Of a stretch of DNA of 64,000 nt, positions 38,820-63,745 are shown in pieces; the stretch's first letter is position 1; each line of letters begins with the position of its first letter. A program made the position numbers and the translations under genes. The stretch is from the NCBI RefSeq assembly GCF_006345805.1, contig NC_043010.1:25730001-25794000 (forward strand), read 5' to 3'. Under the pieces are notes generated by a model that was not told the origin of the DNA, made no database searches, and worked only from the letters and a program-made list of their open reading frames with translations. The stretch is from Octopus sinensis (Eukaryota).

Positions 38820-38888
38820 GTTTAGAAGCAGTTGCTTTGGAAATTGGTGGTCATGATCTTGTTTCAGAATTGCTGGAACCCTTTAATC
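38820..38888 (+). CDS. LCORL: Internal coding exon A (69 nt, phase 1-1) of an LCORL/E93/Mblk-1-like pipsqueak transcription factor: (G)LEAVALEIGGHDLVSELLEPFN
   Basis: Acceptor ttcttattcttttacAG|G and donor C|GTGAGT; open frame. The peptide aligns by eye with LCORL '[22 protein letters not shown]' and insect E93 'GLERVAEELMG' (recalled sequences). Confidence 0.75.
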
Positions 38889-40314
38889 GTGAGTATAATT
38901 CTTCTGTCATGTTTTTCTGTATTGATCAGGTTTCGGTATTTTATGCAATCACCTAACAGCATTTATATGGAAGAAAATAAAAAATTGGGATCTTTATTTC
39001 TTAATATTTTTATTTATATTTTTCTGAGTGTTGCCATCATACAAGCAGTTTCATACATTTCCAATCTTCTGTGAAAACATGTCTGGCCATGGGGGAATAT
39101 GATCTTAGTTGGAAATGAGTCAGGGTTGGTGACAGGAAGGGCATCCAACCATAAGAAATGAGCTTTGATAAACTCTTTCCGACCCATGGAAACATGGAAA
39201 AGTGAATGTTAAAATGACAATGACAACTGGGTTTAACAATTAAGTCCTAGAAAACCAAGACCATTTGGCACCACCTTCTCTCCTCTCCCATTTTCTCAAT
39301 ACAACAGTATCACCTAAACACCTTCTCCCAATTCAAAGAATAAGCCAGCTTAATTTCAAACAATGACTGCTAGCTAGGCAAGCAGAATATAAACCTCTTC
39401 AAACAGGCCTCTGTAGTCTTTGGAATGCTCACAAAAAATGAGTCCTTCAAAATAACCATTTCATTTCTGTACCATTGCAAGGATCTTGACTGATCCACCA
39501 GCAACAATGCCAATCCTTATTGTCTTACCTACCAAGCTGAGGCATAATTCACTGTTGGTGCTGCGAATGGTAACTGAGTGTAAAAGCTTGAATTGCTGTA
39601 GTTGCCAACATGCGAGTCAAATTTTTGCAGGCCAAAATTTGCAGCCCAAGAATGGTAGGTTGGCTTTTGCACCAAGACAACTTTTCAGAATCAAACATTC
39701 TGTGTAAAATGCCACAGGATTTTAGAAAGGTATGTTGGAAAATGTGTGGAAGCGTGTGGCTTAGTGACGATTCCTGGACCGGGTGACGCATTGCGTTCTT
39801 TAGCAAAACACTTCATTTTACGTTGCTCCAGTTCACTCAGCTGGCAAAAATGAGTAACGCTATGATGGACTGGCGTCCCGTCCAGCTGGGGAACACATAC
39901 GCCATAGAAACCGGGCCCATGAGCCTGGCTAGGCTTTAAAAGGACACATTTATTATTTTATTTTATGTTGGAAAATGTGGTACACAAGAAAATGTGTATT
40001 ACTATCAAAATGTCTAGGTCAGTTGTTTACGTAACAACAAACAACAGGTTTCAATGAAAAATGGTAAGAAAGCATTAAAAGCTTCTCTTCATTTACTCTT
40101 TTATTTATTTATTTCGGTTCCAGCCATTCAACTGCAACCATGATGAGGCAGTGTTTTCAGAAGTTTCGTCTATCACATCAGCCTCAGTACTTGTGTGTTC
40201 CTAACTATTTATTGTTTTCTTTTACTTTTGAAAATATTAGGAATCTTCATGTTTTTCATTTTATACCGTGTGTGTATATATCTATCCATACATACATACA
40301 TACATACATACATA

Positions 40315-40534
40315 TGAGGGGGGGGGGTTGAAAAGTTCTTGGCTTTAAGGTATTGCAAAAGGCCTGGCTGGAGGCCCAACCTTCCAAGTTCTTTTACAGT
40401 GCTTAGAAAAACTGAAGGACCACTGCAATAAGTGTGTAAATCTGAGAGGGGAATATGTTGAATAAAATCATAATTAATTGATCTTCTTGTATTTTATTTT
40501 ACCCAAAACCAGGAACTTTTCAGCACCCTACTTG
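40315..40534 (+). mobile_element. mariner-derived MITE (copy 2, inside a local duplication)
   Basis: Nearly identical to 38514-38733, including the flanks. Confidence 0.8.
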
Positions 40535-41155
40535 TATGTATGTATATATGTATGTACATACATATGTATGTACATACATATGTATATGTATGGTACTTAT
40601 TTCATCAATCTCTATTTATAAGTTACTGGACATTAGGGACACAAACACTGGTTTATATCAGTGTAAACAATCACAATCTCAGGAACAGTTTTACATCATT
40701 CAGCAGTTTCTCTCCAGTGCAGCATTTCAAGACTCTGTCATTCATGTATTCTTCCTTAATACATCTAGCAGAGCATGTTTGCCTTTTTTCTTTCCAGCTT
40801 CTGCTAATTCTTCATATTCAAGACTAACATTTTGCATTATGCAGCATCCCACTTTGTACTCAAGCATCTTACAAACCTGCACTCCTCTCTGACGAAGGAG
40901 CCCTTCTCTTTGTCACCACCAGAGGTAGTAGTTCCCTAAACATTTTTCACCCAATTCCTATTCTGGCAACAATGTCTCAGAACACCCACCTCCACCACTA
41001 ATTAGGTCACCTAGATACAACAGGAAACTATTATGACTACTTCTTGGGAGCCTTCAGGGCACTGGAATCTATTTCATGTGTACTCTCAGTGCTATGTGCA
41101 TATAACACTCACACACACACACAAATGTGAGTATGTATGTGTACACTGGGGAGAG

Positions 41156-41212
<57 letters not shown>

Positions 41213-41914
41213 TATATACATACACACACACACACATTCCCACATGCATGCACATACATACACACAGACATGCACAGCACTTTGGGCAAGTGTTTTATGG
41301 ATTTAGTACATGAACATTAAAAGAGGACCATTGTATGTATGTATATATAATGATGTATAATGAACTTATTGTATACAGTGCTCAGGTGCACTACAACTCA
41401 TCAGAAAAAGTAGCCAGAAGTGCATGTACAGTGCATAGAATATTGCACAGAAAGTGAACAGTGAATGTGTTGTTTAAAAAATGGAGGGAGCATCACGTGT
41501 GTGTGTGCGTGTTTACATCTGCAATTGCTTGTATAAAAGTGCAGTGGTTGATGTTGTCGTCAGTTTCTCCAGTCAGTGAATTGTATGGGCACCTTGTGTC
41601 TTTAAAGTCATAAGGATTAAGGGATCCCTTATCTGATAAACAGGTAAGGTTTAATGTCAGGAAAGGCATCCAGCTGTAAAACAATGCTTCAAATAATATA
41701 TTCTTCCAGTCCATGCAAGGATGGAAAATTTTCATCAGCATTGTAGGTGCAGGCATGGCTGTGTAGTAAGAAGCTTCCTTCCCAACCACATGGTTCCAGG
41801 TTCAGTCCCACTGCTTGGCACCATGGACAAATATCTTCTACTATACCCTTGGGTCGACCAAAGACTTGTGAGTGAATTTGGTAGATGAAAACTGAAAGGA
41901 GCCTGTCGTGTGTG

Positions 41915-42948
41915 TATATATATAAAATAAAAGAAGGAAAATGCACACAGTTTACATAGTTTTAATATATTTTTTGATATATTTTATAAGTGAAAGAGTA
42001 TTGCGTTTGTCAACCGGTTTCGCTACAAGTAGAGTTATCTAAGGGGAGGTAATTGATGATCATTATTATTTGGGCCAAGGGAGGTAATTGCTCATACTTT
42101 AGTGAGGGAATAAATGAATACAGAAAAACTCAAAAGCTAAAGTAGTGAGATGAAGTATTTACAGTGATGGGTATGTGAACATGAATTAAAATATATACTG
42201 AAACCAAAGTTTTTATGCATTCATATTTAGGCATGTTCTGTATTTTTTGACAAATAAATTTTCTTTATTGAAACGTTCTTGTACAGAAATTATTTCTTTG
42301 CACTGGTAGATGAGGAAAAGTGTTAAGATTTGTTTGATATTACCTGCATATCTCTCTATGTGTCCTATGTAGTTATGTCCACAACCTGAACAAGTTATAA
42401 CATGAATTAGATTCTTGGAAGCACAAGTTAAGTTGGTTTTAATTATGAACCTCTCTCTTTGAATAGGAATTCCAAGCCTTCCAACAATATCTGTACAAGA
42501 ACATTTAAATAAAGAATCTTTATTTATCAAAAATACAGAACACACCTAAATATGAATGCATAACAAACTTTGGTCTCAGTATATATTTTAACTCATGTTC
42601 ACATAACCATCACTGTAAATATTTCATCTCACTACTTCAGTTTTTGAGTTTCTGTATATTTATTTATCCCCTTCCCAAAATAGGAGATATTACCTCCCCT
42701 GTCCCAAATAATAACAGTCACCAGTTACCTCCCCTTAGAATTTTCTACTTCATTTCATTCACAAACTTTCATACACAACATGGACTAAAATCTTCTTAAG
42801 AAAATACAAAATTACAATAATTTCAATGTCATGATTAGCAAAAGTGAAACCGGTCGACAAAACAAGACTCTTTCACTTATAAAATATATTAGAAAATATA
42901 TTTAAACTATGTAGACTGTGCATTTTCCTTCTTTTATTTTATATATAT
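41915..42948 (-). mobile_element. 5'-truncated Penelope-like element with GIY-YIG remnant and inverted pseudo-LTR
   Basis: Minus strand FIIKTNLTCASKNLIHVITCSGCGHNYIG (GIY-YIG-like). Arms 41915-42291 and 42487-42948 are inverted copies; TA tracts at both ends; lies between two halves of a family A SINE (41745-41915, 43015-43235). Confidence 0.85.
42827..42859 (+). ncRNA. Degenerate minimal type I hammerhead ribozyme motif in the Penelope pLTR
   Basis: TGTC-ATGATTA-GC-AAAA-GT-GAAA-CCGG-TC-GACA: 4-bp stem I, CUGAUGA box with 2 substitutions, 2-bp stem II, GAAA, palindromic stem III, GUC site. The other arm retains GCGAAACCGGT (42012-42023, minus strand). Confidence 0.65.
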
Positions 42949-43469
42949 GTATATATTTGCATTACAACTCACCACATGGGAATAATCGAAATTCTCCTCC
43001 TGCCTTTTTCGTACTATATATATATGTGTGCGTGTATCTTTCTGTCTGTGTTTGTCCTACCACCACTGCTTGACAACCAGTGTTGGTGTGTTTGCATCCC
43101 CATAACCTAGCAGTTTGGCAAAAGACACTGATAGAATTAGTACCAAACTTAAAAAGTAAGTCCTGGTGTTGATTCCTTCGACTAAAAATTCAAGGCAGAT
43201 GCCTCAGCGTGGCTGCAATCTAATGATTGAAACAAGTAAAAGATGAGAGATTGTTTTAGCATCTGCCTGTTCATGCTTGCAGGGGTCACACAATTCATTG
43301 AGGTACATTTTCTACAGCTAGATGCCTTTGCTGTTGCTAACCCTCACCTGTTTCCATACAAGTGAATATTTCCCTTTAGCTAGACATGTGTTTTTACATG
43401 AGAGACTGAGAACAAACAATGTTACCTGTATGATGGTATTGCCACTTTGCAGCTATCATGTGATGTCAA

Positions 43470-43477
43470 ACATGGGT

Positions 43478-43510
<33 letters not shown>

Positions 43511-43860
43511 TGTACACATATGCACATGTACATACACAAACACACATGTACACACAAACACATACATATACACATATACACACACACATATGCATACATG
43601 TACATGCACACACACCTGTACACATGCATACCCACATGTACACATGCACACACGCACACATGTACACTTGTACAACGCACACACACATGTACACATGCAC
43701 ACAAACATACACATTCATACACACATACACACACACATGTGCACACATGTAAACACACTAATACACATGTGCACCCACATAAACACACACTCGTACACAC
43801 ATGTACACATACAAACATGCACACACATACACACACAGATAAACACACACACACACATAT
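43470..43860. repeat. Degenerate (CA)/(CATA)/(TGTA) low-complexity tract
   Basis: Directly visible; source of the HT/CV-rich pseudo-ORFs. Confidence 0.95.
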
Positions 43861-45204
43861 TATGCAAAGGGCTTTTCTCAGTTTTAGTCTCTAAAATCCA
43901 CTCAAAATGCTTTGGTTGGCTTTGGGCCATAATCCTTTCTGCTATAGGCACCAGACCTGAATTTTGCAGGAGGGGGTAAGTTGATTACATCGACTCCAGT
44001 ATGTAACTGGTATTTATTTTTTTGAGCCTGAAAGGTTGAAAGACAAAGTCAACCAGGTGGAATTTGAACTCACAACATAAAGATAGACCATGTTTGAGGC
44101 TAGGCAGCGAGCTGGCAGAATCGTTAGCATGCCAGGTGAAATGCTTAGCGATATTTCATCTGCTGCTACGTTCTGAGTTCAAATTCTACCGAGGTCCACT
44201 TTGCCTTTCATCTTTTCGGGGTCAATTAAATAAGTACCAGTTACACACTGGGGTCAATGTAATCGACTTAATCCCTTTGTCTGTCCTTGTTTGTCCCCTC
44301 CGTGTTTAGCCCCTTGTGGAAAATAAAAAAATAAAAATAGAAAGCACTTGCATCGGCCCCAGTACTCAGCTGGTATTTATTTTATTGACCCCGAAAGGCT
44401 GAAATGCAAAGTCGACCATGGCAGAATTTGAACTCAGAACATAAGGATGGACAATGTTTTGGGTTATAATAGAAAACACTTGCCTCAGGTGCTGTGTAGT
44501 GGGATTGAACCAAAAACCACAAGATTGGGAAGCAAGGTTCTTAACCACACAGCAACACCAGCAAGCATGGCAAAATAATCATGAAACAAACGTAGAAACA
44601 AAACAGGGTTGTGATTAAGAGTGATTTGGCTGCTATTTCAAGCAACCACATAGAAGTTTCATTGATGTTGGAAAAGTAAGCTGGAAGTATTTTCCAAATG
44701 AGATTGTCTGCTGCTTTTATTCAAACTGATCGAGTTATAATATAGAAACTCTCTTTGGCTCCATCTGAGCTTCGTATCCACTTGCTTATTCCATCTCACC
44801 AACACTTGTATAATTAGGCAGAAGAAGATTAAATAATAATAATAATCGTAATCATAGAAGAAGAAGAAGAGGAAGAGGAGGAGGAAGATAGATCATGAAA
44901 ATTTGATGATCAAATGTTGGGCCATTTGTTGCCATTACTGTAAAGTCAATATGTCAATGTGATATGACAGTTGGAATTAATCTAGGGAGAGTAGGAAGGA
45001 ATTAATATGCACGAGACCAGAAGAAATGTTAATAAAAGGCAATGCTTAGGAAGGAAGGGTCATAACTCATAATAGTATAGCGCTGAACAGTTAAAACGGT
45101 AATGGTAATGTTGGCCATTAATCAAAGTCTATAAATTTTCCAAAATTAGCATTACAAATCTACATTGTACCATTTCCATATAACAACTTATTTCTGACTG
45201 GTTT

Positions 45205-45585
45205 TGTATAAAAGCATCTTCAGATAATTTGACAATGGAATATCTGTGTTGATTGTCTGACCAGCTAAAAATAGCAGCTAAATCTCCCTCATTTCGCATC
45301 GTCTATTTTCAACTGGCTTTGTATAAAAACAAGATGTTCAGATTATCTGACAAGAGAATCTTTATGCTATTGTTTGACCTGTGAGAAATAGCAGCCAAAT
45401 CTCCATTATCTCTCATCCCTATTTTCAAATTGCTGTGTTTGAAAACAACATTTTCAGATAATCTTTGCAATTGTTTGACCTGTTAGAAATGGCAGCTGAA
45501 TCTCCCTCATCTCACACCCTGCTGCAATTAAGGAGGCCTCTACATGATTGTTCGACCTACTAAAAATAGCAGCTAAATCTTCTGT
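45205..45585 (+). repeat. Degenerate minisatellite with four copies of a 35-bp core
   Basis: Core TTGTTTGACCTGCTAGAAATAGCAGCTAAATCTCC starts at 45253, 45370, 45471 and 45548; intervening sequence partly homologous. Confidence 0.75.
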
Positions 45586-45832
45586 TAATCCTATTGTTAT
45601 CATGTTTCTATTGAAATACTCTGCTTTTGTTTCATTTAACTTTTAAAATAATGAAGAATGTAGAAAAATAACTTTTGTCATTATTAAACTGGTGCCTGAG
45701 TCATAAATTGGTGTGAAATCTTAAATTTCAGTTTAAATTTAAATCACCTTACAACATTCTCCCCCACCGCTTTCCCTCTCACTATCTCTATCTATCTATC
45801 TATCTCTCTTTTTATCTATCTATCAACCTCTG

Positions 45833-45864
<32 letters not shown>

Positions 45865-46864
45865 CAAAATTCTTCACAACTATTTTACTCTTCTGTACGA
45901 GTCTGTCCTTCTCATTATAAATTGTTGAACCTTCAACCATCTTTTCTTTCTCTCTTCTCTCTTTATTTTTCCTTCTTTCTCTTCCCCCTCCTCTTCTTTC
46001 TTTCTTTCTTTCTTCTCTTCCTCCTCTTCTTTCTTCTTCTTCTCCTTCTTCTTTCTTCTTCTTTCATTGTATAACATTTTATTGCCGAGGTGAATTACTA
46101 TTACATGTAATGAGTAACCAGTTCTATTGTGCACCAAAATGTCATCAGTAGAAATTGTAATAATACTGAATGCATAATAGACCTCATTGTGATCCGATGT
46201 GTTCCCAAGTGGTAGATCTTATCAATATAACTGGAGGCTGACTGATCAAAACTAGACACACCACAGCCACCAGCCACCACCGGCCAACACTACCATCACC
46301 ACCAGCTGTTACTGCCATCAGCCGCATCTATATGTGAACCCATCAGCTGACTTGCTCTTGCCTCTCTACTCAATACAGCACACTCACATCCATACATTAC
46401 ATTACATATACATATACATGTGTGTGTGTGTGTGTGTAATAAGACCAAGTGTACCAGTATCAATATGCCAAACCCACTTAGCATCTACTTGTTGTCTTCA
46501 ACTAACTAAATTTAGATTCTCAGTGATTATATCTTAAACTGTCCCTTGCTTGCGGATTGGTTCTCTTTCTTTAACACTTACTGGTTCTTTTCATCCCAGT
46601 CCATTATTATTTATTTTACAAGCAGAACAATTCAATCCATTGCTAAAAACTACTTGTGTTGAAGAATCTGCTTTCTCTGTTGCTGCTGCTGCTGTTTGTT
46701 TGCAGCTTATTTCTTATTCCTTGTTTGTTTGATATTTTGTTTATGTGTGTTTTTCTTTTTTGGAGGAGGGAGGTTTTTTTTTTGGTTTATTCGTCTCTTT
46801 TTCTCTCATTCTGATTCAGTGTCAGTCTGTCCATCTGTCTCTCTCACACACAGTATACTCCTTT

Positions 46865-46901
<37 letters not shown>

Positions 46902-47044
46902 CCTCTTACTAAACCCCTTCTTCTACTCACTTTCTTTTTCACATGATGACTCTTCTTCTCCTCATCCTCTAATTCTTTCTTTTTCCCCTCCATCTCTTTC
47001 TCTCTGCTAATTATGTATGTATGTATGTCTGTGTGTGTGTGTGT

Positions 47045-47310
47045 GTATCATCATCATTGTTTAATGTCCGCTTTCCGTGCTGGCATGGGTTGGACAGTTT
47101 GACTGAGGACTGGTGAGCCAGAGGCTGCACCAGGCTCAATCTGATCTGGCAGAGTTTCTACAGCTGGATGCCCTTCCTAACGCCAACCACTCCAAGAGTG
47201 TAGTGGGTGCTTTTACATGCAACCGGCATGAGGGCCAGTCAGATGGTTCAGGCAACGACCATGCTCAAAAGGTGTTTTCTACGTGCTAGCTGCACAGGAG
47301 CCAGTCTGGT
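47045..47310 (-). mobile_element. Family C SINE/RTE 3' end, well preserved
   Basis: Reverse complement of the 720-935 type; (ATC)n at the left end. Confidence 0.75.
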
Positions 47311-47324
47311 GGCACTGGCAATGA

Positions 47325-47396
<72 letters not shown>

Positions 47397-48416
47397 ATGT
47401 AAAAAAATACAAACTGGGACAAGAACGCAAAACATTTAGAAGACGATATGTATATGTGTGTGTGTGTGTTTGTATGTATGTATGTATAAATATGTATACA
47501 CTCTGACACACATATAAGTTATCATCATCATCATTTAACGTCTGTTTTCCATGCTGGCATGGGTTGGTTGGGTTGATAGGAGTTAGCACACTGCACAACT
47601 GCACCAATCTCCAGTTGCCTTGTTTTGACATGGTTTCTACAGCTCAATGCCTTTCCTAATACCAACCACATTATGGAGGGTCCTAGGTGTGTTATTCTCC
47701 ACAGACCTCTCACTCTCTTCTTTCTAACTCTGTTTCTCACTTCTGTCTCGCTATTTTCCTCCCATATTCCACCACTCGTTCTCGCACTCAGTCTTTCTTT
47801 AAAAATTAATCTTAGCCATTTTATAACTTGATTTTGAATTGGTTTTGCAAGATTATTGATACAAAATTGCATGTTGAAATAGATTTTGTTTTATATTGGG
47901 ACGGTCACTATGCCAACAAGAAACACGTGCACTGGTTAAATTTCACTTCTTTTAGACAAGCAGTGGTTAAATTTCATTTCTTTTAGACAACTAATTAGCC
48001 ATTTTGCCAATTAAGTAGTCCATTGTTGGAATTAATTGTTCAGGCATTTGATTGATGAGCTATTATCATTATTTCATTAAAGTGATGGCATGCTGACAGA
48101 ATCATTACTGTTCTGGACAAAATGCTTGACAGCATTTCTTCGAGCTTTACATTCTGAGTTCAAATTCTGCCAAGTTGATTTTGCCTTTCATCCTTTCGCA
48201 GTCAATAAATTAAGTACCTGTGAAACACTGGGAAGTCGATGTGATTGCCTAGTCCCCCTCCCTCAAAATTTCACACCTTGTGCCTTTAGTAGAAAGGATT
48301 ATTGTTATTCATATACACTCAACAGATTAAACTGTTGGAGAAGAAAAGAATCCTAACATTGGGTTACAACAAGTAGCCTTAGATGCCAGGAACCCTCCTA
48401 AGTTTCCTAGCTGTCC

Positions 48417-48419
<3 letters not shown>

Positions 48420-48468
<49 letters not shown>

Positions 48469-49303
48469 TTCACTTTTAATCTGCATGTTTGTTACTTGCC
48501 GAGACACACCCAGTGTCTTGGGATGAGTGAAAGATAAGAGATGTTACAATATGACTGAAAGCTTGGGGAGGGGAGGTAGTGAAATATCTTCATGTAATAC
48601 AACACAGACATTTAAATGGATAGGTTTTTCTAAGGATGTGGGCAGTATTTGTCAGTACAATCTTTTGGATATCTCTGAGACATGGTTCTCCTGGGATCTT
48701 ATCAAGTTTTTTCTGACATCCCTTTTTTATCATACCCAGGGCACCTACAATAACAGGAACAGTTCTTATTTTAAGATGCCACATCTTTTGTATTTCAATT
48801 TCCAGGTTCTTATGTTCACTTAGTTTGTCAAATTCCTTGACAGATATATTTTTTTATAAAGAACAAAAAGTTTTGAATGGTACAACAATGCACTATAATA
48901 CAGACAATGGGCTATATACCTGTTGTAATTTAGTCATCCTGGGAACGCTTACCTCTATTAATGTACAAGTATTTTCTTCCCTGTCTTTAATAATTGTGCC
49001 TGGTCGATTAACCTGGATCATTCTGTCAGTGTTGACTGGAAAATCCCAAAGGATAGAGGCATTTTTATCTTCAATGACTGGCTCAGGATGATGTTCATAC
49101 CAGTAAGCAGGAGAGCTGATTTTGTAGTGTTTACATATTTTCCAATGTAAATACTGTCCTACCCTGTCGTGGCAATTTTTATATTCGCTTGGTGTCAGCA
49201 CAGGACATCCCAAGACAAGGTGACCTATTGTTTCATCAAATGTGTTGCAGAATCTGCATTTAGGGTCAGAACATTATTGTTGTTGTTGTTGTTGTTACTG
49301 TTA

Positions 49304-49340
<37 letters not shown>
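48420..49340 (-). mobile_element. Dong/R4-clade non-LTR retrotransposon 3' fragment (CCHC knuckle + RLE) in (TAA)n
   Basis: PKCRFCNTFDETIGHLVLGCP (C-X2-C-X7-H-X4-C), HDRVGQYLHW, ILWDFPVNTDRMIQVNRP, IEVSVP, VPVIVGALG...AHILRK; (AAT)n at both ends. Confidence 0.88.
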
Positions 49341-49344
<4 letters not shown>

Positions 49345-50225: not shown

Positions 50226-50612
50226 TTTGACACTTGCATAAACTATATAACATTGAAGTTCTATGGTGTTTGGTTAACAGACTGACACCTGTTACATCTG
50301 ACCTTCTTGTCAAAAAGCTGGCACCTGAGATGGAACTGTCCAAGATGCAGAAACCCTAAAACTGGGCCCCATATAATCATCGTCAATGGATTATTTTTCT
50401 TTTATATATTTCATTGTGAAGATGAGATGTAGAAATGAAACAAACCCAACCAAACAAAAATTGTGTTGTTATAAGTCTTATTTCCTTTGAAACTCTTCTT
50501 GGAAATGAAAAAAAAAATGTGACTGTGAATGCTATCATCCTCCTCCTCCTCCTCATCTTCATCATTATCATTATCATCATCCATTTATTTTCCAAGCTAG
50601 CACGGGTTACAT

Positions 50613-50893: not shown

Positions 50894-53800
50894 GGTTAGA
50901 TGATTTGACATGATTCAATAAGTCGGCAGGCCTGCATTGAACTCCAATATCTGCTTTGACATGGTCTCAATGATTGGATGCCTTTCCTAGCATCGACCAC
51001 TTCACAGCATCTGTTGAGTTCTTTTTCCATGACACTCGCACAAGTGAGGTCACCAAGTAATTCATAAGACAAAGAGAGAGAAAAGTCCCATACTCGACTG
51101 CGTGGAGTTGTACATGCACACACACGCACAAAAAGACTCATGCATACACACATCTATACATACATTCAGACATACTTACACAGTTACATACATCTGTGTG
51201 TGAGTGACCTACCCCTGCATTAACCATTTTTTGTTAACTCCTTCTTCCTCAGTGCATAATCCCTCAGGAATTCCCTGCCCACCCACGTTCAGACATCGAC
51301 TTAGAGTTATTCAAAGTTTGCAGAGGTCCTGCAAAATTTCATGAGAACTACCCACTTTTCTGCTGAGTAAACTATTTTTTAGAAATATCAAAAAGTACCC
51401 TATTTTTTGTTTGGGACTAAAAACTTCTTAGATACATCAACATGTTTAGACCTTCCTGATTGATTCAAGATTCTCTGAATGAAAAAAAAAAAGTATCTCC
51501 TGTTCACAGTTGTCTGTCTCCTTGTTGCTTTGTTCTTTGCTAGGATCAGTGCGAATGTTGATGTGTCTGTCTGTTATTGGTTATCATTTAACTTACGCTG
51601 CTGTCAAATACTAGTATATGTTAATGCTGAGATTAAGAGCCTTTCTCCTTTCTAAGCCACTGGGCAAGGTACTAAGGGCGATAACTTGTGACCCTCACTG
51701 CTGTTTAATCCTTTTACTGTGGAAATCAAGATAATAAATATCCACTCAAAATTCCATTATCTTTAACTGCAGAAAGCAGTTTTATATAACAATCAATCTT
51801 TTGTTGAGGAATGTCATGTTTGAATCTATTTCCTGTTGAGTCAAGTTTATTGAAGCAACGTAACTGGCAGAAAATACCAATTCTATGTTTTGGTAGATAT
51901 TTAACCTCAATACTGGAATAACCACAAAATTTGATTTTGCACTAAAAAGATTAATATTTTTGAGAGATTCACTGGTATCAGCGTTACTTACATTCTTCCT
52001 AGTTGTTAATTCAGAAACTGTTTTTGATTTCTTAACTTATGTAGGATGCCTTCGTTCAGACATTATTATCATCATACCATTCAATCTGCTTTTATTATAC
52101 AATGTATAATACTTTTTTTTATTCTTCAAATTATAATGAACTTATTGTATTCACTATTGAGGTACCTTTTCATTGGAAAAGGGTAAAAGAGGGGAGAGAA
52201 AAGTAGCTGGGCTGCAACCATGCTGACACGCCACCTTAAACAAAGGAGAAGCCGGGATTTTTTTGGAGTGTTGTCCAAAAGTTTTGAAAAAATACTGTAT
52301 AAGGTGGGAATCACAGTTTGTAACAAATGGACTTATTTTTATGGATTTTAACTTTGGTGTAGCAGACCATATGTAAATGAAAGAGAAATGCTGTGAAACT
52401 GTTGCTTGAAAATCTTGGTCCTGATTTGTTTGGTGTCGGCTCAGCTAGAAAGGGTGTTGCCCGGGCAACTAAGGCAACACCCCTGCATCCGCCACACTTA
52501 AAGGGTTTAGAGTTAATTGATCGACTCAACCTCAATACTTATGTTAAGTCTGGCAATTATTCTATTAGTCCCCTTTTTCCCTTTTTTTTTTCAAATTGCT
52601 AAGTCATCATCATCATTATAATTTTAAGGTTTACTTTTTCTTGCTCACACACATGCACCCAACTAGCTTACTACCAAATCCACTCTCAAGGCTTTAGTTG
52701 GCCCAAGGCTATAGCAGAGGACTCTTGTCCAAGGTGCCAGTAGTGGGATTGGACCCAGAGCCATGTGGTTGGGAAGCAAACCTCTTGTCAGACACCCACA
52801 CCTGCCCCTGGACATGTATATAAACCTATCTCATTTGTCAAGTGGTGTGAGACAAACACACATATGCACACACACACACACGTGTAGGTTTGTGCACAGT
52901 TTCCTCACATGGCATTGGTTAATCAAGGGCATAGAAGATTCTTGCCCAAACTGCTGCACATTAGAACTGAACACAAAACCATGCTGTTGAGAAGCAAAAG
53001 TTTTGACCACACAGCCACACACACACACACACACACATGCACATACGTTCTTTTATTTGTTTCAGTCATTTTGACTGCAGCCATACTGGAGCACCGCCTT
53101 TAGTTGAACAAATCGACCCCAGGACTTATTACAAAGAATAATTCTATCGGTGTCTTTTGCTGAATTGCTAAGTTATGGGGACGTAAACACACCAACATCA
53201 GTTGTCAAGCGACTGTGGAAGGACAAACACACACACAAACATATATATATATAAATCCTTAAAATGGGACAAGAATGCAAAACATCCAGACAGTTAGGTG
53301 ATACAAAAAAAGGGATAACAAAACATCCAGATAGACAATACAAAGAAAACAAGGATGGGTCATTCAAAGTTTTCTTTCCTCAGTTGAGTTCCAGAAAAAT
53401 AATATATATACACACACGACGGACTTCTCTCAATTTCCGTCTACCAAATCCACTCACAAGGCTTTGGCTAGTCCGAGGCTATAGTAGAAGACACTTGCCC
53501 AAGATGCCACGCATTGGGACTGAACCTGGAACCATGTGGTTGATAAGCAGGCTACTTACTACACAACCACTCCTGCACCTGTTGTTTTAACCAGTCACAC
53601 ACACACATATTCGCTCGCACATACATGCATAATTTTAATATATATATTTGTTGCTTATAAGATAAGAAATGAAATTTTAGGACTGAAGTATTGATGTACA
53701 TATTTTCGTTTAATTAATCAAGCATTCGCATTATAAAATATTCTTTATGAAACCATAACATTACGGGAGATTTTAAGATTGTAAAGGGAGACAATTAAAG

Positions 53801-54176
53801 TTCTACAGTAAAATTATCCGATAGAATAAAGCCTGATTAACAGTCATTCTTAGTTTATTCGATAAAAATATAATTCTAAAAAAAATAATTGATATAGAAC
53901 AAACACTAATTAATATTTTCAATTAATATCTTTAGAACCTTGTTCAATGATACATTAAAGTGTATCACAGAAGTTATTTACTTTTGTTAAAGATTTAACA
54001 ACCGCTGTTATGAGAAAACTGGCTTTCATTTATATTTTCTTGTATTTTAAGCTTTACTAATAAATTACCAATATTTTTCTTTTTTTTTTATTTCTCCTCC
54101 TAATTTTAGTCATTTGATTGTGGCCATGCTGGAACACTGTATCATTAAATATCTTTATATATAATATATATATAAA

Positions 54177-54332
54177 TTTAAAATGGGAAGGCTGGTTTAT
54201 GGGATTACACTGTTGGCCTAAGGAGGTCGTAGGCCAACAGATTTTGAGGTTCTGATGAAATGCCAAAAAGCTAAACCCTTTATAGGCAGGAAACCCAAAG
54301 AAATTCCATAAACCGGCCTTCCCCATTTTTAA
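54177..54332 (+). ncRNA. Structured hairpin element with a degenerate hammerhead-like core
   Basis: About 28-bp closing stem, inner 11-bp hairpin CTGTTGGCCTA/TAGGCCAACAG, intact CTGATGA (54252-54258) followed by AATGCC-AAAAA-GC-TAAA-CCCT..AGG; next to TA tracts. Confidence 0.45.
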
Positions 54333-54387
54333 AATATACTCTAATCTACACCTTGGAGTGTACTTCTCTAGATTTATGTCTTCTATA

Positions 54388-54424
<37 letters not shown>

Positions 54425-54485
54425 TTATTTTTCAAGGAATAACAATTCCGGCATAACAGAGGTTCAAATTATTCTCAATGAAGAA

Positions 54486-56047
54486 ATATATTTTAATTTA
54501 GAGATAGTATACCCCTACTTCTCACCAAATAAAAAGAATTTTTATTTTTATTTTAAATACCTATTGTTTTATTCCTTGGCAACACGTGTTTCATGAGGTA
54601 CATCCTCGGCTTCCTAAACCACTCCGTGTTTCCCTGAAACCCCTCTCAAGATACCACCCCAATCATCAGGTCCTTATAACTTTATCAACGTTCAATACAA
54701 TAAACTATATTTTAATTTTAAATCCCATAAGTATGTTTAAATTAGGTATGTTTAGTTTTACTGGACTTTACAGTACAAGCCATAATTCAGTTAAAAATTC
54801 AAATAAAGATAAAAAGTTACATGAATAAAGTAAGGAATAAAAATCACAAAAAATATACGAAAATTTACAAAAACAATGTTAGTTATATATAGTGTTCCAA
54901 ATAAAATAAAATTTACAAATACTGTTTTAATAATATTTAATAAAAAGTGTGAATAAAAGTAAATCCAAGTAAAAATAAAAAAATAAAAATAAAAAAAGAT
55001 AGCAAGGAAAATATAGACGAATAAAAGTTAATAAACATGGAGGCAATTACGAAGAGATAATCTATATATATAAAACTGTAGTTGTGTGAGTGTCTGTCCC
55101 CTTCGATTTAGATTCCTAACTCCTCCCACATTTTGCGGTGCAGTTTAACCAAATTCGGGTATCTTATAGTCGTGATTAATATCGAGCCCGTCTGGCTATT
55201 AGTGCGCATCTACGATGAGTCTACGATTTTAAAAATAATTTAACATCATTTTTTATTCCATTTTAATGCATAATTTTTCATGTGTCGATGGCGGCGGAGT
55301 TGGCGTCTACACTCAAACACCTGCACCTGTGTTTGCTTCTCCCCCTTCTTCCCTCCCTCGTGAAGCTGTGGGGAAGGGAGTTTAAAGAAATCAACGTCGT
55401 AATGCGTCGTCAAGGAGACCAGCGTTCTTTTAGAACAACGACTTCATGGCTTGAAGACACCAAAACAGAAATGGCTAAGAAAGCCCGAATTGGCATCTAT
55501 AAAGGAAGTAACTCTCTAAAAATGCTTATATAGTTATTTCCCTTACAAACCCGAGCAACGCCGGGCGATACTGCTAGTTTCAAATAAAAGAGCTATAGTT
55601 CTAATAGGAACTGCAAAATTTCAAGTGATACAAATGGTAACTTTTTTTTTTTTTAATTTCAAGTGATACGAATGGTAACTTTATAAAAATTTACAAAGTA
55701 AAATAAAATAAATATAACTTGATGGTAAAGTAAGGAAAATATGCAATTCACCGATAGCTCCATTATCCTACAACGTCCTAATGATGGCCCAACATTGCGA
55801 AGTACTGGGGTATGGGATTTATGCGATTTAAAAATTAAAATATAGTTTATTGTATTGAACATTGATAAAGTTATAAGGGCCTGATGATTGGGGTGGCATC
55901 TTGAGAGGGGTTCCCGGGAAACATGGAGTGGAAGGATGTACCTCATGAAACACGTGTTGCCAAGGAATAAAACAATAGGTATTTAAAATAAAAATTTAAA
56001 TTCTTTTTATTTGGTGAAAAGTAGTGGTATACTATCTCTAAATTGAA

Positions 56048-56053
<6 letters not shown>
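54486..56053. mobile_element. Element with about 240-bp inverted terminal arms (54486-54730; 55817-56053), Penelope-pLTR-like
   Basis: The arms are reverse complements; both carry CTGATGA and a downstream GAAA-CACGTG-TT palindrome. AT-rich interior interrupted by a Helitron; no ORF recognised. Confidence 0.6.
55061..55577 (+). mobile_element. Non-autonomous Helitron, 517 bp
   Basis: A|TCTATATATATAAAA start, subterminal hairpin CCCG-AGCAACGC-CGGG, CTAG|T end, no TSD. Confidence 0.9.
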
Positions 56054-56101
<48 letters not shown>

Positions 56102-56164
56102 GTTTGATGATGCAAACAGGAAAAATAGAACTCAAAATAAGAGTTTATGTATATTTTTATTAAT

Positions 56165-56246
56165 ATTTAGCTGAAGCAGCAGAGTAACTCTGGGGCCGAG
56201 AGTTTTGTGTGTTGGCATTTATCAAACATTGTTGCTTCTGCTAAAT
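56165..56246 (-). ncRNA. Hairpin element with a decayed hammerhead-like core
   Basis: Minus strand: 17-nt closing stem (15/17), then TTGATAA-ATGCC-AACA-CAC-AAAA-CTCT-CGGCCCC-AGAG-TT; the core differs from CTGATGA/GAAA only by transitions. Confidence 0.4.
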
Positions 56247-58086
56247 AAATACATATATATATTTATCATCATCATTGTCAGCATTATTTAACATTCATTT
56301 TCCATGCTGGGCAGTTTGACAGGAGCTGATAAAGCTGGGATCTGCACCAGGCTCCATTATCGGTTTTGGTTTTGGCATGGTTTCTACGGCTAGATGCCCT
56401 TCCTAATGCCAACCACTTTACATAGAGTGGACTGGGTGCTTTTTACATGGTACTAACACCAGTGCTTTCTATGCAGCACCAGCACGGACAGGGTCACCAA
56501 GTAATTTGTTAGACAAAAACCAGACCTCAGCTGGGTGGTGGGGCTTTGTGCCAGTTGATGAGAAAGTAGAGGTATAGAGGGACAGGGATCGGTGTCATAA
56601 TCCTTTTATGGAACTCAAAGCAGATAAGGTATAAATAAGAACCCCTTGGATAGATAAAAGTCAAACAGTGTCATGTATACAGAAGGTGTAAGTTCAAGCC
56701 TTATGAGCAGCTTTTGACTTTTTCTATTCAAAGGGGTTTTAACCCAATATTTACATGCTATTATTTATAGCTTTATATGCTGGTGGCACATAAAAAGCAC
56801 CATCCGAACATAGTTACTGCCAGTGCCATCTAACTGGCTCCCATACCGGTGGCGCATAAAAAGCACCCACTACACTCTCGGAGTAGTTGGCATTAGGAAG
56901 GGCATCCAGCTGTAGAAACCTTGCCAGATCAGACTGGAGCTTGGTGCAGCCTACTGGCTTCTGTGAAACTGTCCAATCTATGCCAGCATAGAAAACGGAC
57001 GTTAAACGATGATGATGATGATGATTCTCTCAAAGTTTCCAAATTCCTATGTCAACAACATGTACCTACATGCACGCACACACACACACACACAACACAC
57101 ACACACACACAACAAAATACCTGTTCTTGTCCTTCTATGTTTCTTTAGTATCTCAGTCCCTGGCATAAAGTCACCTCTCCCGTCATAATCCCCACCACCA
57201 CTTAGACATGGGGGCTTTTCCCTTTCCTGTTTTTTCTTGTCTTGCATCTTATTTTACCACGTCACTAGTAGTGCTGGTGGGACGAAAAGAAAAAGCACTA
57301 AGTACACACTGTAAAGTGGGTGCTGTTAGGAAGGGCATCAGCTAAAGAAAACTTGCCAGAGGTGACACTGGAGCTTAACACAGATCTTCAGTTTGACAAA
57401 CCCTGTCAAACTGTCCAACCCATGGACGGGAAACCCAGGGTAATCCCATAAACTGGCTTTACACATTAAATAAATGATAATGATGATACATATCTACACA
57501 TTACATACAATATATATATATATATATATATATATTCCTTTACTTGTTTCAGTCATTTGACTGTGGCCATGCTGGAGCACTGCCTTTAGTCAAGCAAATT
57601 GACCCCAGGACTTATTCTTTGTAAGCCTAGTACTTATTCTATCTGTGTCTTTTGCCGAACCCCTAAGTTACAGGGACGTAAATACACTAGCATGGGTCGT
57701 CAAAGATATACACACATACATATGTATATATATGATGGACTTCTTTCAGTTTCCATCTACCAAATCCACTCGCAAGGCTTTGGTTGGCCCGAGGCAATAG
57801 AGAAGACACTTACCCAAGGTGCCATGCAGTGGGACTGAACCCAGAATCATGTGGCTAGTAAGCAAGCGACTTACCCCACAGCCACTCCTGTGCCTCATGT
57901 GAAGTACCAACTCTTCCATGTTGCACACTTGAATAATTGTGAATATCTCTGGACATGAAACCATTGGTTGCCTTGTTAACCCACAAATATAAGAATATTT
58001 ACCCTCCAATGTGGCATTGTGCACACATTCTTGCTGTTTGATATTAACATGTATGTGTGTGTATGTATGTTTATATATATATATAT

Positions 58087-59530
58087 GTTAGTTAGTTAGT
58101 TAGTTAATTTGGCTCAAAAGCAAATAGCAAGGCCATGTAGGGGGACATGGAGTTAAGTACAGGGTGGTGTTCATGTAAAGAGTTCAGGCCACTTGAGGTC
58201 CAGGGAGGCTTTGAACAAAGCGGTCGTCGGCATCTTCACCATCTCATCTGGCAGCTTGTTCCACGGATCCGCAACCCAGACGGAGAAAGCTCCTCTCCTT
58301 CGATTGAGATGAAATCGTCGCAGGTAGAGCTTTTCGGAATGACCCCGCAGCCGATGCTCCGGAGCAGGAGTGAAGAACAGCTCTTTCGAGAGGTTACACT
58401 TCCCGCTTATGATGTTGTGGGCGAGAATGAGATCACCACGGCGGCGGCGTTTTTCAAGAGAATAAAGGTCGAGCTTCCTCAGCCTTTCTTCGTAGGACAA
58501 ATTTTTGAGACCATGAACCAGGCGGGTAGCCAGCCTCTGGACTCTTTCGAGGTGCTGTATGTCTTTGAGGAGATAAGGAGAAGAGGCTTGAATCCCATAC
58601 TCCAATATGGGTCTCACCAGCGTGACATAGAGTGGCAGGAATATGGCTGCTGTGAGCACTCCGAATGGCCGTCGAATCAAAAACAGAATTCCGCGCGCTT
58701 TGTTGGCAGCATGGACGCACTGGGCCGAAGGCGAAAAGGAGGAATCCACCAAGATACCCAGGTCCTTTACCTGATCGGTCCTCTCCAGCAGCAGACGACC
58801 CGGCTCGAAATCAAGTTGAGTTGTAGGAGTAGAGCCGACAGGCAGATGACAGCACTTTGACACATTCAGACACAGGTCCCAATCGTTAGACCACTTCCAA
58901 ATTTGGTGGAGGCATCGACGAAGATCCTCTATACTACCGCGAGGAGCGACCAGTTTGATATCGTCGGCAAATAGAAGGGTGTGTTGCGTGAGGTTGTCGG
59001 GCAAGTCATTTATGAAGACTAAGAACAACAAGGCCCAAGCACTGAACCTTGAGGCACGCCACTGCTCGCACTGGAGACGTCGGACCGCGAACCATTAACT
59101 TGAACTTGGAAGGAGCGATCTGAGAGGAAGGCACCAACCCATCGTACAATATCCGGATGGAAACTATATGCTTGAAGCTTGACAAGTAGTAGGCGGTGGT
59201 TTACCGAGTCAAAAGCTTTGGCAAAGTCCAATAAAACGATGTCAACAGCATCACTATCATCGAGGATGCGCGTCACCAATTCTTCCATTACTAGTAAGTT
59301 GGTCAAGCATGATCTCTTCGGCACGAAGCCGTGTTGGGAATCAGTGATCGAGGCTGTGCTTAGGAGGTGGAGCATCATACTTTTCTTAAGGATGGTTTCG
59401 AACATCTTGCTGATTATTGATGTAAGGGAAACCGGTCGGTAGTTAAGCGGGTCTTCGCGGCTCCCTTTCTTGAAAATTGGGCAGATTATCGCTGTTCTCC
59501 AGTCTGCAGGTATAACACCCGTCGCCAACC
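58087..59530 (-). mobile_element. 5'-truncated CR1/L2-group LINE; RT with a single frameshift; (TAAC)n tail
   Basis: WRTAIICPIFKKG..DPLNYRPVSLTS, LDFAKAFDSVNH, GVPQGSVLGP, LFADDIKL, KDLGI, ERVQRLATR, RRRGDLI, WNKLP. 1-nt shift at about 59030; tail GTTAGTTAG at 58087-58107. Confidence 0.92.
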
Positions 59531-59970
59531 TCTTTATCATTCTGTTTTCTCTTTTTTTCAAGTCATTTCACTTCCCTTAACACTAAGCCACCACAACAAG
59601 CAAATGACAACCAAACTTTCCTTTTTTCTTTCTGGCTTTTAAAAAATGTTTTTTATTTCTTGTCCTTGCCATACTTTTTTTTTTCCAACTCATTAACTTC
59701 TTCACGGCAGGATTTCCTTTGATCACTTGTGACCTTTTTGTAATTGTGTTTAACTCAACTGTTCAAACCAGCATTTGTTTGCCTCATATATTAAATAACA
59801 AACCAACAACAACAACAACATCATTATAAGATGTTCATGTTTTGTTTTGTTTTTTACTTTTTTTTTTCTTTGATAACACATCTTTGTATATTATTTTATA
59901 CTCTTACATATTTATTAACAAAGATATTAACGGGATATTTTTTATACTTTTATTTTTCTCTTTCTCACAG

Positions 59971-60047
59971 GTTTAGAAACAACTGTTGTCAGCGACTGGG
60001 AACCGCAGGAAACCTGCTTTTATTGTGATTCCAAAATAACTTACCCT
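59971..60047 (+). CDS. LCORL: Internal coding exon B (77 nt, phase 1-0): (R)LETTVVSDWEPQETCFYCDSKITYP
   Basis: Strong acceptor ttttatttttctctttctcacAG|G, donor CCT|GTAAAT. Contains DW-x4-CxxC (DWEPQETCFYC), like LCORL 'DWSMDEKCSFC' and E93 'DWTPQDKCYFC' (recalled). Phase fits exon A. Confidence 0.78.
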
Positions 60048-60579
60048 GTAAATAACATATATTCTTCATTTTCATTTTTTTGTTTTTTTTTCACTTTCGT
60101 TGTTTTTCTTCTTTTTTTTTAGGTAGGTTTTGTTTTGTTTTTGTTTTTTTTTTGTTTTTTTTGCCACTTTTCTTTTCTCTTGGTTATTTGTTGTCTTTTA
60201 CCATTTGTAATGTTCATATTTTTCAAAAATTCTAACAAATTTCTCTCTTTTTTCTTTTCTGAGCATAATTTTACAAAATTTTAAAAAGTGCATGGTTTGT
60301 AAGAATGACGGGATATTTAAGTCTAACTTTCATAAATCAGAAATCATATCTATCTCTCAATCTTCATTTTTTTCTATCTATCTACCTATATACATACACA
60401 CACAAAACACAGGCACACACACATACACACACAGAGGCCGACATGCAAATATCTATATTCAAGCACAAGTTTGTGTGTGTGTGTGAATGTATGTGCATTG
60501 TCAAAATTTAAGATCAAGGTTGGAAAAAAATCATTATGATTATTATTATTATTATTACTATTATTTTCACTATCATTAA

Positions 60580-60618
<39 letters not shown>

Positions 60619-61267
60619 GAAAAAATTTCTTTCTTTTTTTACTTGTGTGGGTGTGAGTATAGGTGGAGGAATGAGTTGATGGGAACAGAAATAAGTTTTT
60701 ATTAAAAAAAAAAAAAACACACCCTGTTCTACTGATTTGACTTTCACTAAATCAGAAGTTACCAACAAGCATTCATTTACATTTGGGTTGTTTTTTTTTA
60801 AATACCCCATTAATTATTATTACATAATCTTTTGTTTATTTATTTATTGTTTAAATGTTAATACATTTTGAGGGTCTAAAGTCTGGCCAGAAGCCCAGCC
60901 AGCCAACCAGCGGTCATTTGTTGTGTTATAACACTTACATCATTGTATTGACTATATATCATACTATATCTGAGATTGTTGCTCCAGCATGGCCTTTGCT
61001 GTGCTGGCTAAAATGAGTGCAAGAAGTAAAGCGCATATCATGGATTTTAAATTCTATAACAGTCAACCTCAGGATTACTAAACTTACATAAATTACATAA
61101 TTTTAGCACAAGCTGTATAATTAAGGTGACGCTCCAGTATGGTCACCTTAACCATGACAGTTAAAACAAACTAAAACACACACACATGCACACACACACA
61201 AATATACATGATGGCTGCAACGGTTCTTATTTATGTAAGTATGTCTATACATATATATATATATATA

Positions 61268-61833
61268 TCCTAGGGTTTTATCATTTTGTGTGTGTGTGTG
61301 TGTGTGTGTTTGTATGTGTATCTATTTGTCTACCTTTCCATCTAACTATCTATATTTATATGTGTATGTTTGTATTCATGTATGTATACATATTCATACA
61401 TATATATATGTGTGTGTTGTGTTTGTACCCCCATGTGGTCACACTACGCGATAGTCATAAACGAGTGCCACCATTATACAAAGCAGTGTCCTTTGTTTCC
61501 AAACATAACCAGCCAAGAGGAAGGACATCCGTCACAAAAAACATCTCCTTCAACACACTTCATCTGATCCAAGTAGGCATGGAAAAGCACAATGGTATTC
61601 TCCCATAATTCAGCATGTTTTCCATGAAAGACTGGAAACAAACAACCTCACTTGTATGACAATGAGGATCGTTTACAACTGTCGCATGATGACTAGACAA
61701 GGGTACACACAAACACACACATATATACATATACATATATACTGCAGGCTTATTTCAGTTTCCCTCTACCAAATCCACTCATAAGGCTTTGGCTGATCCA
61801 GGCAATAGTAGAAAACATTTCCCCAAGGTGCTG

Positions 61834-61866
<33 letters not shown>

Positions 61867-61885
61867 TATATATCCTAGGGTTTTA

Positions 61886-61916
<31 letters not shown>

Positions 61917-62437
61917 TTGTATGTGTATCTATTTGTCTACCTTTCATCTAACTATCTATATTTATATGTGTATGTTTGTATTCATGTATGTATACATATT
62001 CATACATATATATATGTGTGTGTTGTGTTTGTACCCCCATGTGGTCACACTACGCGATAGTCATAAACGAGTGCCACCATTATACAAAGCAGTGTCCTTT
62101 GTTTCCAAACATAACCAGCCAAGAGGAAGGACATCCGTCACAAAAAACATCTCCTTCAACACACTTCATCTGATCCAAGTAGGCATGGAAAAGCACAATG
62201 GTATTCTCCCATAATTCAGCATGTTTTCCATGAAAGACTGGAAACAAACAACCTCACTTGTATGACAATGAGGATCGTTTACAACTGTCGCATGATGACT
62301 AGACAAGGGTACACACAAACACACACATATATACATATACATATATACTGCAGGCTTATTTCAGTTTCCCTCTACCAAATCCACTCATAAGGCTTTGGCT
62401 GATCCAGGGCAATAGTAGAAAACATTTCCCCAAGGTG

Positions 62438-62440
<3 letters not shown>
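61268..62440 (+). repeat. Near-perfect direct tandem duplication, unit about 605 bp, bounded by (TA)n
   Basis: Units 61268-61833 and 61873-62440 differ only in microsatellite length and single-base homopolymer indels. Confidence 0.92.
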
Positions 62441-62489
<49 letters not shown>

Positions 62490-63702
62490 GTGTGTGTGTG
62501 TGTATGTATATTTATATATATATATAAATATATGTAGGTGTGTGTTTGTGTTTGTCCCCCACCGTCGCTTGACAACTGATGTTGGTATGTTTATGTCCCT
62601 GTAACCTAGCAGTTTGGCAAAAGACATCGATAGAATAAGTACTAGGCTTACAGAGAATAAGTCCTGGGGTCAATGTGTTTGACTAAAGATGTTGCTCCAC
62701 ATGGCTGCAGTTAATTGACTGAAACAAATAAAAGAATAAAAGAACATCGTTCCATTTGTTGGATAGATCATCTTCAAGGTCTTACCTTGCCTGTTTACAC
62801 CTGTTCAAAGTTTTACCTGAAGATGGTGGATTTATACCATGGTGTTATCTATGACTACATCAATAAAATTCTACCAAAACAGCTACAGTAAATTTTAAAC
62901 CCCATTTGAGTTCTTTTTATATCTACCCCACACCTGAAACTAACACTGAGTTGGACCTATGGTTTATATTGAATTTGGTACCTACATATATATATACACA
63001 CACCTGCAGTACACTATAAACACATGATACCTCATGGTTGTTTTATCTCATGAACCCCACATCATGGTACCTAGCCAGTTATGGCATCCTATGTGTTGAT
63101 GCACCTGGATTCTAATGAATCCCATGACTAATCAATGTATATATATATATGTTTGTATATGCATTTGTGTACATGTGTGTGTATGTTTGTGTGTGTGTGT
63201 GATACACACTTTCTCATATATATACATTTACACATTAATATATATCTGTACCTACATACCAGTGTGTGTGTGTAACAATGTTGGCAATGACTTTTTTGGA
63301 CATACTTACCCACACCAGTCCTGTATCAGTTAAGATGTTCCCTGTTTCTTCATATCTTCTATTTCAAAGATTCTAACAACCAACAGTGCCTATTGTTACT
63401 GACCCAGTTAAGGGCACTTAATTCTCTAAAGACTTGTTTATTTCAAACACATACATACACACACAGAGTCTTTCTTTCTCATTCACTCTACCTACCTACC
63501 TACCTATCTTTCTGCCTATCTCTTTTTTACTTCCTTCCATCCCCCTCTCTTTCTCTCTCTCTCTCTGTCTTTCCTTCCCTCCTGCTCTCTATCACTTCTC
63601 TCTAGAACTTCTATAAGGATAAATTGCTACCTGAATAGTTTCTGAATGAAAAAACCCCAAGATTGTCACTATATAAATATCTTTTCATGTTGACCTTTTC
63701 AG

Positions 63703-63745
63703 GGCTCTGAAGTTAGTGAAGATGGCATTAGTAAACTACCCTCAG
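63703..63745 (+). CDS. LCORL: Probable next coding exon C (43 nt, phase 0-1): GSEVSEDGISKLPS
   Basis: Acceptor tcttttcatgttgaccttttcAG|G and consensus donor CAG|GTAAGT. The phase-0 frame is open and matches the end phase of exon B. No peptide-level recognition. Confidence 0.6.

Follow-up and report, generated by a model that had tools for sequence, protein, structure and literature searches.

The locus considered here raises the question of whether three very short open segments, lying thousands of nucleotides apart among repeats, can be the exons of one conserved gene. They lie in a 64,000-nt stretch of Octopus sinensis contig NC_043010.1 (25,730,001-25,794,000), which we call the window and number from its first letter; its guanine-plus-cytosine content is 36%. 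In our view, the window most probably contains exons 2, 3 and, with less certainty, 4 of a single lophotrochozoan-type regulator of the E93/Mblk-1/LCOR/LCORL family, whose members carry pipsqueak (psq) helix-turn-helix (HTH) domains. We give this reading, drawn from sequence comparison and with expression and DNA binding only predicted, a probability of about 0.88.

The three segments (exons A, B and C, Table 1) are flanked by AG and GT, and their splicing yields 189 nt with a sole open frame, which encodes the 63-residue peptide (G)LEAVALEIGGHDLVSELLEPFNRLETTVVSDWEPQETCFYCDSKITYPGSEVSEDGISKLPS and thereby sets the phases 1-1, 1-0 and 0-1. A preliminary description of this DNA had proposed just such a chain, with exons of 69, 77 and 43 nt, these same phases and introns of 21,082 and 3,655 nt, and all of this was confirmed on the sequence. 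That exon A is buried in a mechanically called open reading frame (ORF) also held true (a 73-amino-acid (aa) ORF at 38735-38956), and the introns, described there as filled with transposable elements (TEs), are repeat-rich: in intron A-B 33% of the sequence, and in intron B-C 45%, is found again elsewhere in the window. Unlike these introns, exons A, B and C are each single copy within the window.

The protein relatives of the spliced peptide are few and consistent. A phmmer scan (HMMER) against 1.84 billion representative proteins gave six matches in all, with E-values from 1.3e-7 to 6.8e-5 and each located at N-terminal residues of about 23-87. Five of the six matched proteins are 600-760 aa long with two HTH_psq domains each (E about 1e-28), and the proteins, named Mblk-1-like or LCORL-like by NCBI, come from bivalves (Mya and unionid mussels), the abalone Haliotis, Lingula and the nemertean Tubulanus (lophotrochozoan relatives: Potamilus KAK3595871.1, Mya XP_052771254.1, Haliotis XP_071089466.1, Lingula XP_013412727.1 and Tubulanus XP_074642920.1). 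A protein comparison of the BLASTP type, as called for in the preliminary description, thus falls on lophotrochozoan proteins with two HTH_psq domains, and none of the matches is to an unrelated protein or a TE. Identity between the peptide and its homologues is 45-57% (47-57% in the pairwise alignments, with E 2e-16 and 8e-16), the homologues being no more similar to each other than to the window exons. The junction between exons A and B aligns without a gap (...EPFN-R-LETT... against ...QPFN-C-LEPD...), and all nine invariant columns of the alignment (E3, A6, F22, L25, E26, D32, P35, C39 and C42) are kept in the window peptide, with the invariant D-W...P...C-x2-C present in exon B. In phmmer the peptide is about equally close to bivalve, nemertean, brachiopod and gastropod proteins.

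Detection of the first two exons is also highly specific. We scored the full set of 3,203 six-frame fragments of the window with a lophotrochozoan profile from which the window peptide had been left out. The fragment with exon B came top (E 1.8e-7), followed by that with exon A (E 3.9e-4), and ordinary noise set in at E 1.6. In tblastn, every homologue matches exon A at 38819-38887, and exon B is 55-59% identical to all of them. In four control loci with annotation, a broader profile, consisting of the homologues plus vertebrate sequences, reproduced the annotated exons 1-3 precisely, with no other match below E 0.05. We consider exons A and B secure. The earlier proposal of micro-exons belonging to the E93/LCORL family is therefore supported by matches, gene structures and profile specificity, while of the cephalopod orthology it had put forward, the peptide itself states a lophotrochozoan origin only. 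Ten ORFs of the window were absent from the protein collection on exact look-up, ENA contig L005, on which an exon 1 is found, has no repeats in common with the window, and the GC content together with the load of microsatellites and interspersed repeats would fit a cephalopod without being diagnostic of one.

Independent support comes from gene structure. We mapped the Haliotis, Tubulanus and Potamilus proteins together with LCORL of the teleost Anoplopoma onto their genomic loci by exact spliced matching, and because lengths and phases agree with these mapped structures (Table 1), exons A, B and C can be equated with family exons 2, 3 and 4. The window shows the exon structure typical of the family, i.e. 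an exon 2 of approximately 69 nt with phase 1-1, an exon 3 of approximately 71-80 nt with phase 1-0 and an exon 4 with phase 0-1. Exons 2-4 have the phases 1-1, 1-0 and 0-1 in abalone, mussel, nemertean and teleost LCORL alike, which sustains the earlier suggestion of ancient intron positions, here with a vertebrate side consisting of one teleost gene plus mammalian read-through and exon-skipped fragments in place of the human LCORL gene to which it had referred. In the mammalian read-through ORFs the match is lost directly after HCV-G and LFK-G, in agreement with the exon boundaries, and in the mole-rat Nannospalax an LCORL isoform (P0094) has HCV joined to DCEPE, an in-frame skip of exon 2. 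Comparison of these structures supports intron positions of exons 2-4 that are ancient and common to lophotrochozoans and vertebrates.

These concordances bear on the objection that short open pieces were assembled by chance or belong to a TE. In its favour stand the very small size of the exons, the abundance of repeats around them and the 123 phase-compatible open stretches within 3.9 kb. However, whole-library E-values down to 1.3e-7 for a query of 63 aa, the location of every match at a single N-terminal site within one protein family, an exon 2 whose length and phases agree with four independent gene structures, and the single-copy state of the exons in the window leave this explanation effectively refuted.

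The link to vertebrates was established with retrieved sequences. A human LCORL N-terminus served as a search lead only; it brought up 80 vertebrate LCORL/LCOR fragments from the collections, the best of them 84% identical. When a profile of five of these vertebrate N-termini was compared by hhalign with a profile of the lophotrochozoan sequences plus the window peptide, the two aligned over 80 columns at a probability of 99.1% (E 4e-19), which bears out the earlier statement that LCORL shares the N-terminal region, and a direct BLASTP comparison of the window peptide with Pristis LCORL gave 31% identity (E 2e-4). The pattern common to both groups is C-x4-C-x-ER[RK]-x-F-x-x-E-L-x-S-W ... V-G-x-E ... 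F ... E-P ... D-W ... C-x2-C. Written out in full, the module reads C-x4-C-x-ERR-x-F-x-K-E-L-x-S-W ... V/G-x-E ... F-x-x/L-E ... D-W-x-P ... C-x2-C, and exons A and B encode its central and C-terminal parts. The two phase-1 introns that interrupt it occupy matching positions in molluscs, the nemertean and the teleost. The window exons carry the part VG-x-E...F-x-x-LE...DW-x-P...C-x2-C in colinear order, with significant scores and with the invariant residues kept.

Exon C is the least secure of the three. Between 60060 and 63990 there are 123 open candidates of phase 0-1 bounded by AG and GT, and exon C alone reaches its own acceptor and donor scores together; in no other candidate does a good acceptor go together with a perfect donor, and exon C is single copy amid a repeat-rich intron. 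It is acidic, as are the homologous exon 4 sequences, and when the peptide is aligned with Tubulanus by BLASTP, the match continues across this exon (SEDG..LP against DEDG..LP). Two points weigh against exon C: it was not found by tblastn with 17 homologues, being reached by the Tubulanus alignment alone, and the Tubulanus "LP" belongs to exon 5, so that the alignment implies a boundary shift of 12 nt. No exon of the family is less conserved than exon 4, which varies from 31 to 112 nt (31, 61, 61 and 112 nt in the homologues), always with phase 0-1. It is conceivable, albeit clearly the less favoured option, that A and B are real and exon C is not the fourth exon, the true one lying past position 64000 or exon B being spliced to a more distant exon; the poor conservation of exon 4, the missing tblastn match and the shifted Tubulanus boundary would all fit, and since intron 3 of the teleost measures 10.4 kb, the true exon could lie outside the window. 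Given the splice signals, the single-copy state, the acidic composition and the EDG..LP in common with Tubulanus, we favour exon C as the true family exon 4, though with distinctly less confidence than exons A and B.

Several observations weigh against the assignment to this gene family as a whole. The preliminary description had suggested looking upstream for exon 1 (CxxERR...W..), and the search disappointed: exon 1 (MVDCGxxRCxQERRxFxKELLSWxKKxPxxV) was not found on the + strand of 1-38819 by regular expression, tblastn or profiles. The same profile recovers exon 1 in five control loci with E-values from 4e-12 to 2e-17, and since it is this strong there and null in 1-38819, exon 1 must be outside the window or lost. 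The 5' end could have been lost, or another first exon could be used. Likewise, tblastn with full-length homologues gave no HTH match in the window, which ends 255 nt past exon C; the exons for the HTH domains, the nuclear-receptor (NR) box and the CtBP motif are predicted downstream of the window, and the DNA-binding domain that defines the family is thus attributed to this gene from its homologues. Further, in an index of 5.8 billion sequences no protein or ORF had words in common with the spliced peptide, a null that covers short ORFs and transcript fragments only, as short queries there gave only proteins of up to 162 aa and the index missed the homologues of 600-760 aa despite many exact shared words. 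Finally, the spliced peptide was not found in JGI metagenome contigs. Exons A-C appear to be unrepresented by any protein in the collections searched, where the best phmmer identity was 55%, and this is consistent with unannotated exons.

The same absences could be explained by a dead gene, in which the exons would be remnants of a unitary pseudogene or of a decaying duplicate, with a functional copy elsewhere or lost. Such decay might leave the picture described here: exon 1 is absent from the 38.8 kb upstream, the collections searched contain neither an annotated nor an assembled protein that has this N-terminus, and a possible degenerate exon 1-2-like relic nearby on the opposite strand hints at past rearrangement. 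On the other hand, all three exons are open with canonical splice sites and keep all invariant residues of the family, and their 45-57% identity equals that among functional homologues. Long first introns are also normal in the family, Haliotis having one of 16 kb and the teleost one of 43 kb, and with these lengths an intron 1 of more than 38.8 kb is plausible in this gene. We therefore hold a dead gene to be very improbable; rather, exon 1 most likely lies upstream of the window.

One further candidate for exon 1 was rejected as a chance match. The + strand peptide "ELDSWKHKL" at 42404-42430, nine residues that resemble the exon 1 motif of vertebrate LCORL, reached E 0.007 with a profile of exon 1 only. 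It lies in a stop-to-stop fragment of 13 aa downstream of exon A, scores 1.2 bits with the lophotrochozoan profile and sits between the inverted-repeat arms 42027-42294 and 42483-42750. Beyond exon 1, three homologous loci have a MORN-repeat gene (MORN4-like by eye) positioned head-to-head immediately upstream, encoded on the minus strand in Haliotis, Tubulanus and an ENA contig (L001, 1-1966; L002, 1-247; L005, 2375-2545), which suggests conserved microsynteny; a MORN4-like neighbour was searched for in the window and not found.

Table 1. Features of the 64,000-nt window and the corresponding exons of the gene family. Lengths in homologues are given as Haliotis/Tubulanus/Potamilus, followed by Anoplopoma LCORL.
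Feature	Position	Strand	Phase	Description	Exon in homologues
Family exon 1	not found in window		0-1		94/67/94 nt; 97 nt
Intron 1 or upstream sequence	1-38819	+		at least 38.8 kb; holds Tc1/mariner copy and other repeats	
Exon A (family exon 2)	38820-38888	+	1-1	69 nt; acceptor ttcttttacag/G, donor ATC/gtgagt; encodes (G)LEAVALEIGGHDLVSELLEPFN(R)	69/69/69 nt; 66 nt
Intron A-B	38889-59970	+		21,082 nt; microsatellites and frameshifted LINE reverse-transcriptase fragment inside	
Exon B (family exon 3)	59971-60047	+	1-0	77 nt; acceptor tctttctcacag/G, donor CCT/gtaaat; encodes (R)LETTVVSDWEPQETCFYCDSKITYP	80/71/80 nt; 80 nt
Intron B-C	60048-63702	+		3,655 nt	
Exon C (candidate family exon 4)	63703-63745	+	0-1	43 nt; acceptor gaccttttcag/G, donor CAG/gtaagt; encodes acidic linker GSEVSEDGISKLPS(G)	61/31/61 nt; 112 nt
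Family exon 5	expected beyond window		1-2		190/169/187 nt; short isoform
Family exon 6	expected beyond window		2-0	both HTH domains in homologues	1.6-1.7 kb; short isoform
Reverse-transcriptase fragment	357-869			second reverse-transcriptase piece in window	
Tc1/mariner transposase ORF	34937-35869	-		uninterrupted, 310 aa; HTH_Tnp_Tc3_2 and DDE_3; may be a young copy; ends some 3 kb before exon A	
Direct repeat pair	38376-38772 and 40189-40572			direct copies of about 397 bp with 94.5% identity; one on either side of exon A and the antisense ORF	
Antisense ORF	39552-39812	-		85 aa; residues 35-78 resemble end of exon 1 and whole exon 2, gapless, no intron	
Inverted repeat	42027-42750			arms 268 bp, 85% identical, flanking a loop	
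Non-LTR (LINE) reverse-transcriptase fragment	58171-59561	-		two overlapping ORFs split by a frameshift; ends about 410 nt before exon B	
Repeat pair in intron B-C	61228-61931 and 61834-62526			707-bp pair, 95% identical; same ORF of about 100 aa in each	

The surroundings of the exons are rich in mobile and repetitive sequence (Table 1; LTR, long terminal repeat; LINE, long interspersed nuclear element), and microsatellites are frequent in the window. The first copy of the direct repeat of about 397 bp stops just 47 nt before the exon A acceptor. An antisense ORF of 110 aa in the loop of the inverted repeat looks GIY-YIG-like by eye but has no Pfam match, and no Rfam family reached its gathering threshold in the window. 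The antisense ORF at 39552-39812, located about 700 nt downstream of exon A, deserves separate mention. It scores E 1.1e-3 with the lophotrochozoan profile in hmmsearch and 31.2 bits in tblastn against a maximum of 25.0 in 60 shuffles. With the broader profile it reaches E 0.046, where noise in the control loci extends to 0.05. It has no nucleotide similarity to exon A and is not complementary to it, for which reason a role as an exon-pairing or editing element for exon A was rejected. It may be a decayed (processed-copy) relic or a chance match, and in neither case is it part of the transcript.

If the exons belong to an intact gene, its organization can be sketched from the homologues. Exon 1, of approximately 94 nt with the start codon and the first cysteine pair, would lie more than 38.8 kb upstream of exon A. 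Downstream of the window, we would expect exon 5 to supply an LxxLL nuclear-receptor box together with a PLDLS motif for CtBP binding, since LxxLL is encoded by exon 5 of all three mapped invertebrate genes and PLDLS occurs in Tubulanus and Lingula. A large last exon with two psq HTH DNA-binding domains would follow. By homology, the product would be a nuclear regulator in which exons 1-3 provide a cysteine-containing module, exon 4 an acidic linker, exon 5 the motifs that dock cofactors and exon 6 two psq HTH domains. Presumably, micro-exons of 43-77 nt would be recognised by exon definition across repeat-filled introns of more than 20 kb, as a long polypyrimidine tract precedes each exon and a good donor site follows it. 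Exon 2, a symmetric phase 1-1 cassette, may be optional, judging from the in-frame skip in Nannospalax LCORL; exon A has the same symmetric phase 1-1 as that skippable exon.

The function of the N-terminal module itself is more speculative. Four invariant cysteines, arranged as C-x4-C in exon 1 and C-x2-C in exon B, suggest zinc binding; ERR, SW and DW are further invariant elements of the module. One could go further and regard exons 1-3 as an uncharacterised zinc-binding domain extending from vertebrate LCOR/LCORL to lophotrochozoans, carrying its two phase-1 introns since the bilaterian ancestor, with exon 2 as a skippable cassette that alters the spacing of the cysteine pairs and the antisense ORF as an old processed-copy relic. 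Taken together, we find this combination doubtful. The structural and domain searches gave the zinc idea no backing: AlphaFold2 on an alignment of eight sequences gave a mean pLDDT (predicted local distance difference test) of 51, which is uninterpretable, no Pfam family matched the peptide or the full homologue N-termini, and a profile sequence search yielded no relative in the PDB.

The practical value of the locus lies in a corrected annotation and in a clear case of intron positions kept between vertebrates and lophotrochozoans. When 5' micro-exons of this kind are missed by annotation, the resulting models would be truncated and devoid of the conserved N-terminal module. No new biological principle emerges from this; it is an ordinary but correct gene find.

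Known members of the family have diverse roles: in insects E93 serves as the adult specifier, among vertebrates LCORL counts as a major locus for body size, and Mblk-1 and MBR-1 have functions in higher brain centres and in neurite pruning. The family comprising Mblk-1, E93, MBR-1, LCoR and Mlr1/2 is defined by the RHF2 psq HTH (PMC5343783). Insect E93 (Eip93F), honeybee Mblk-1 and MBR-1 of Caenorhabditis elegans have a two-HTH architecture like that of the lophotrochozoan homologues (PMC5343783, PMC12897451), whereas the vertebrate proteins have one psq HTH (PMC5343783). Motif lists for E93 name RHF1/2, the NR box and the CtBP motif (PMC12897451), and the N-terminal module does not appear among the motifs listed in either paper (RHF1, RHF2, NR box, CtBP motif; PMC5343783, PMC12897451). 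On the E93 side, a shared module is suggested by one unnamed, more divergent fragment (P0023), which has exons 2 and 3 fused in a single ORF with an insertion. Vertebrate LCORL/LCOR (Anoplopoma and Pristis LCORL as well as the short human LCOR isoform) possess a homologous N-terminal module, as does the window, and in Anoplopoma LCORL the intron positions and phases of exons 1-4 are those of the lophotrochozoan genes. The teleost gene differs from the window in its exon 2 (66 nt), its exon 4 (112 nt) and the low identity to the window peptide. Closest are the lophotrochozoan Mblk-1-like and LCORL-like genes, with a colinear N-terminal region, an identical exon 2 length of 69 nt and the same phases of exons 2-4. 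Compared with the molluscs, exon 3 of the window is one codon shorter (77 instead of 80 nt) and its exon 4 is of intermediate length (43 nt), and the window introns, at more than 38.8 kb and 21 kb, are much longer than those of the homologues (5-20 kb).

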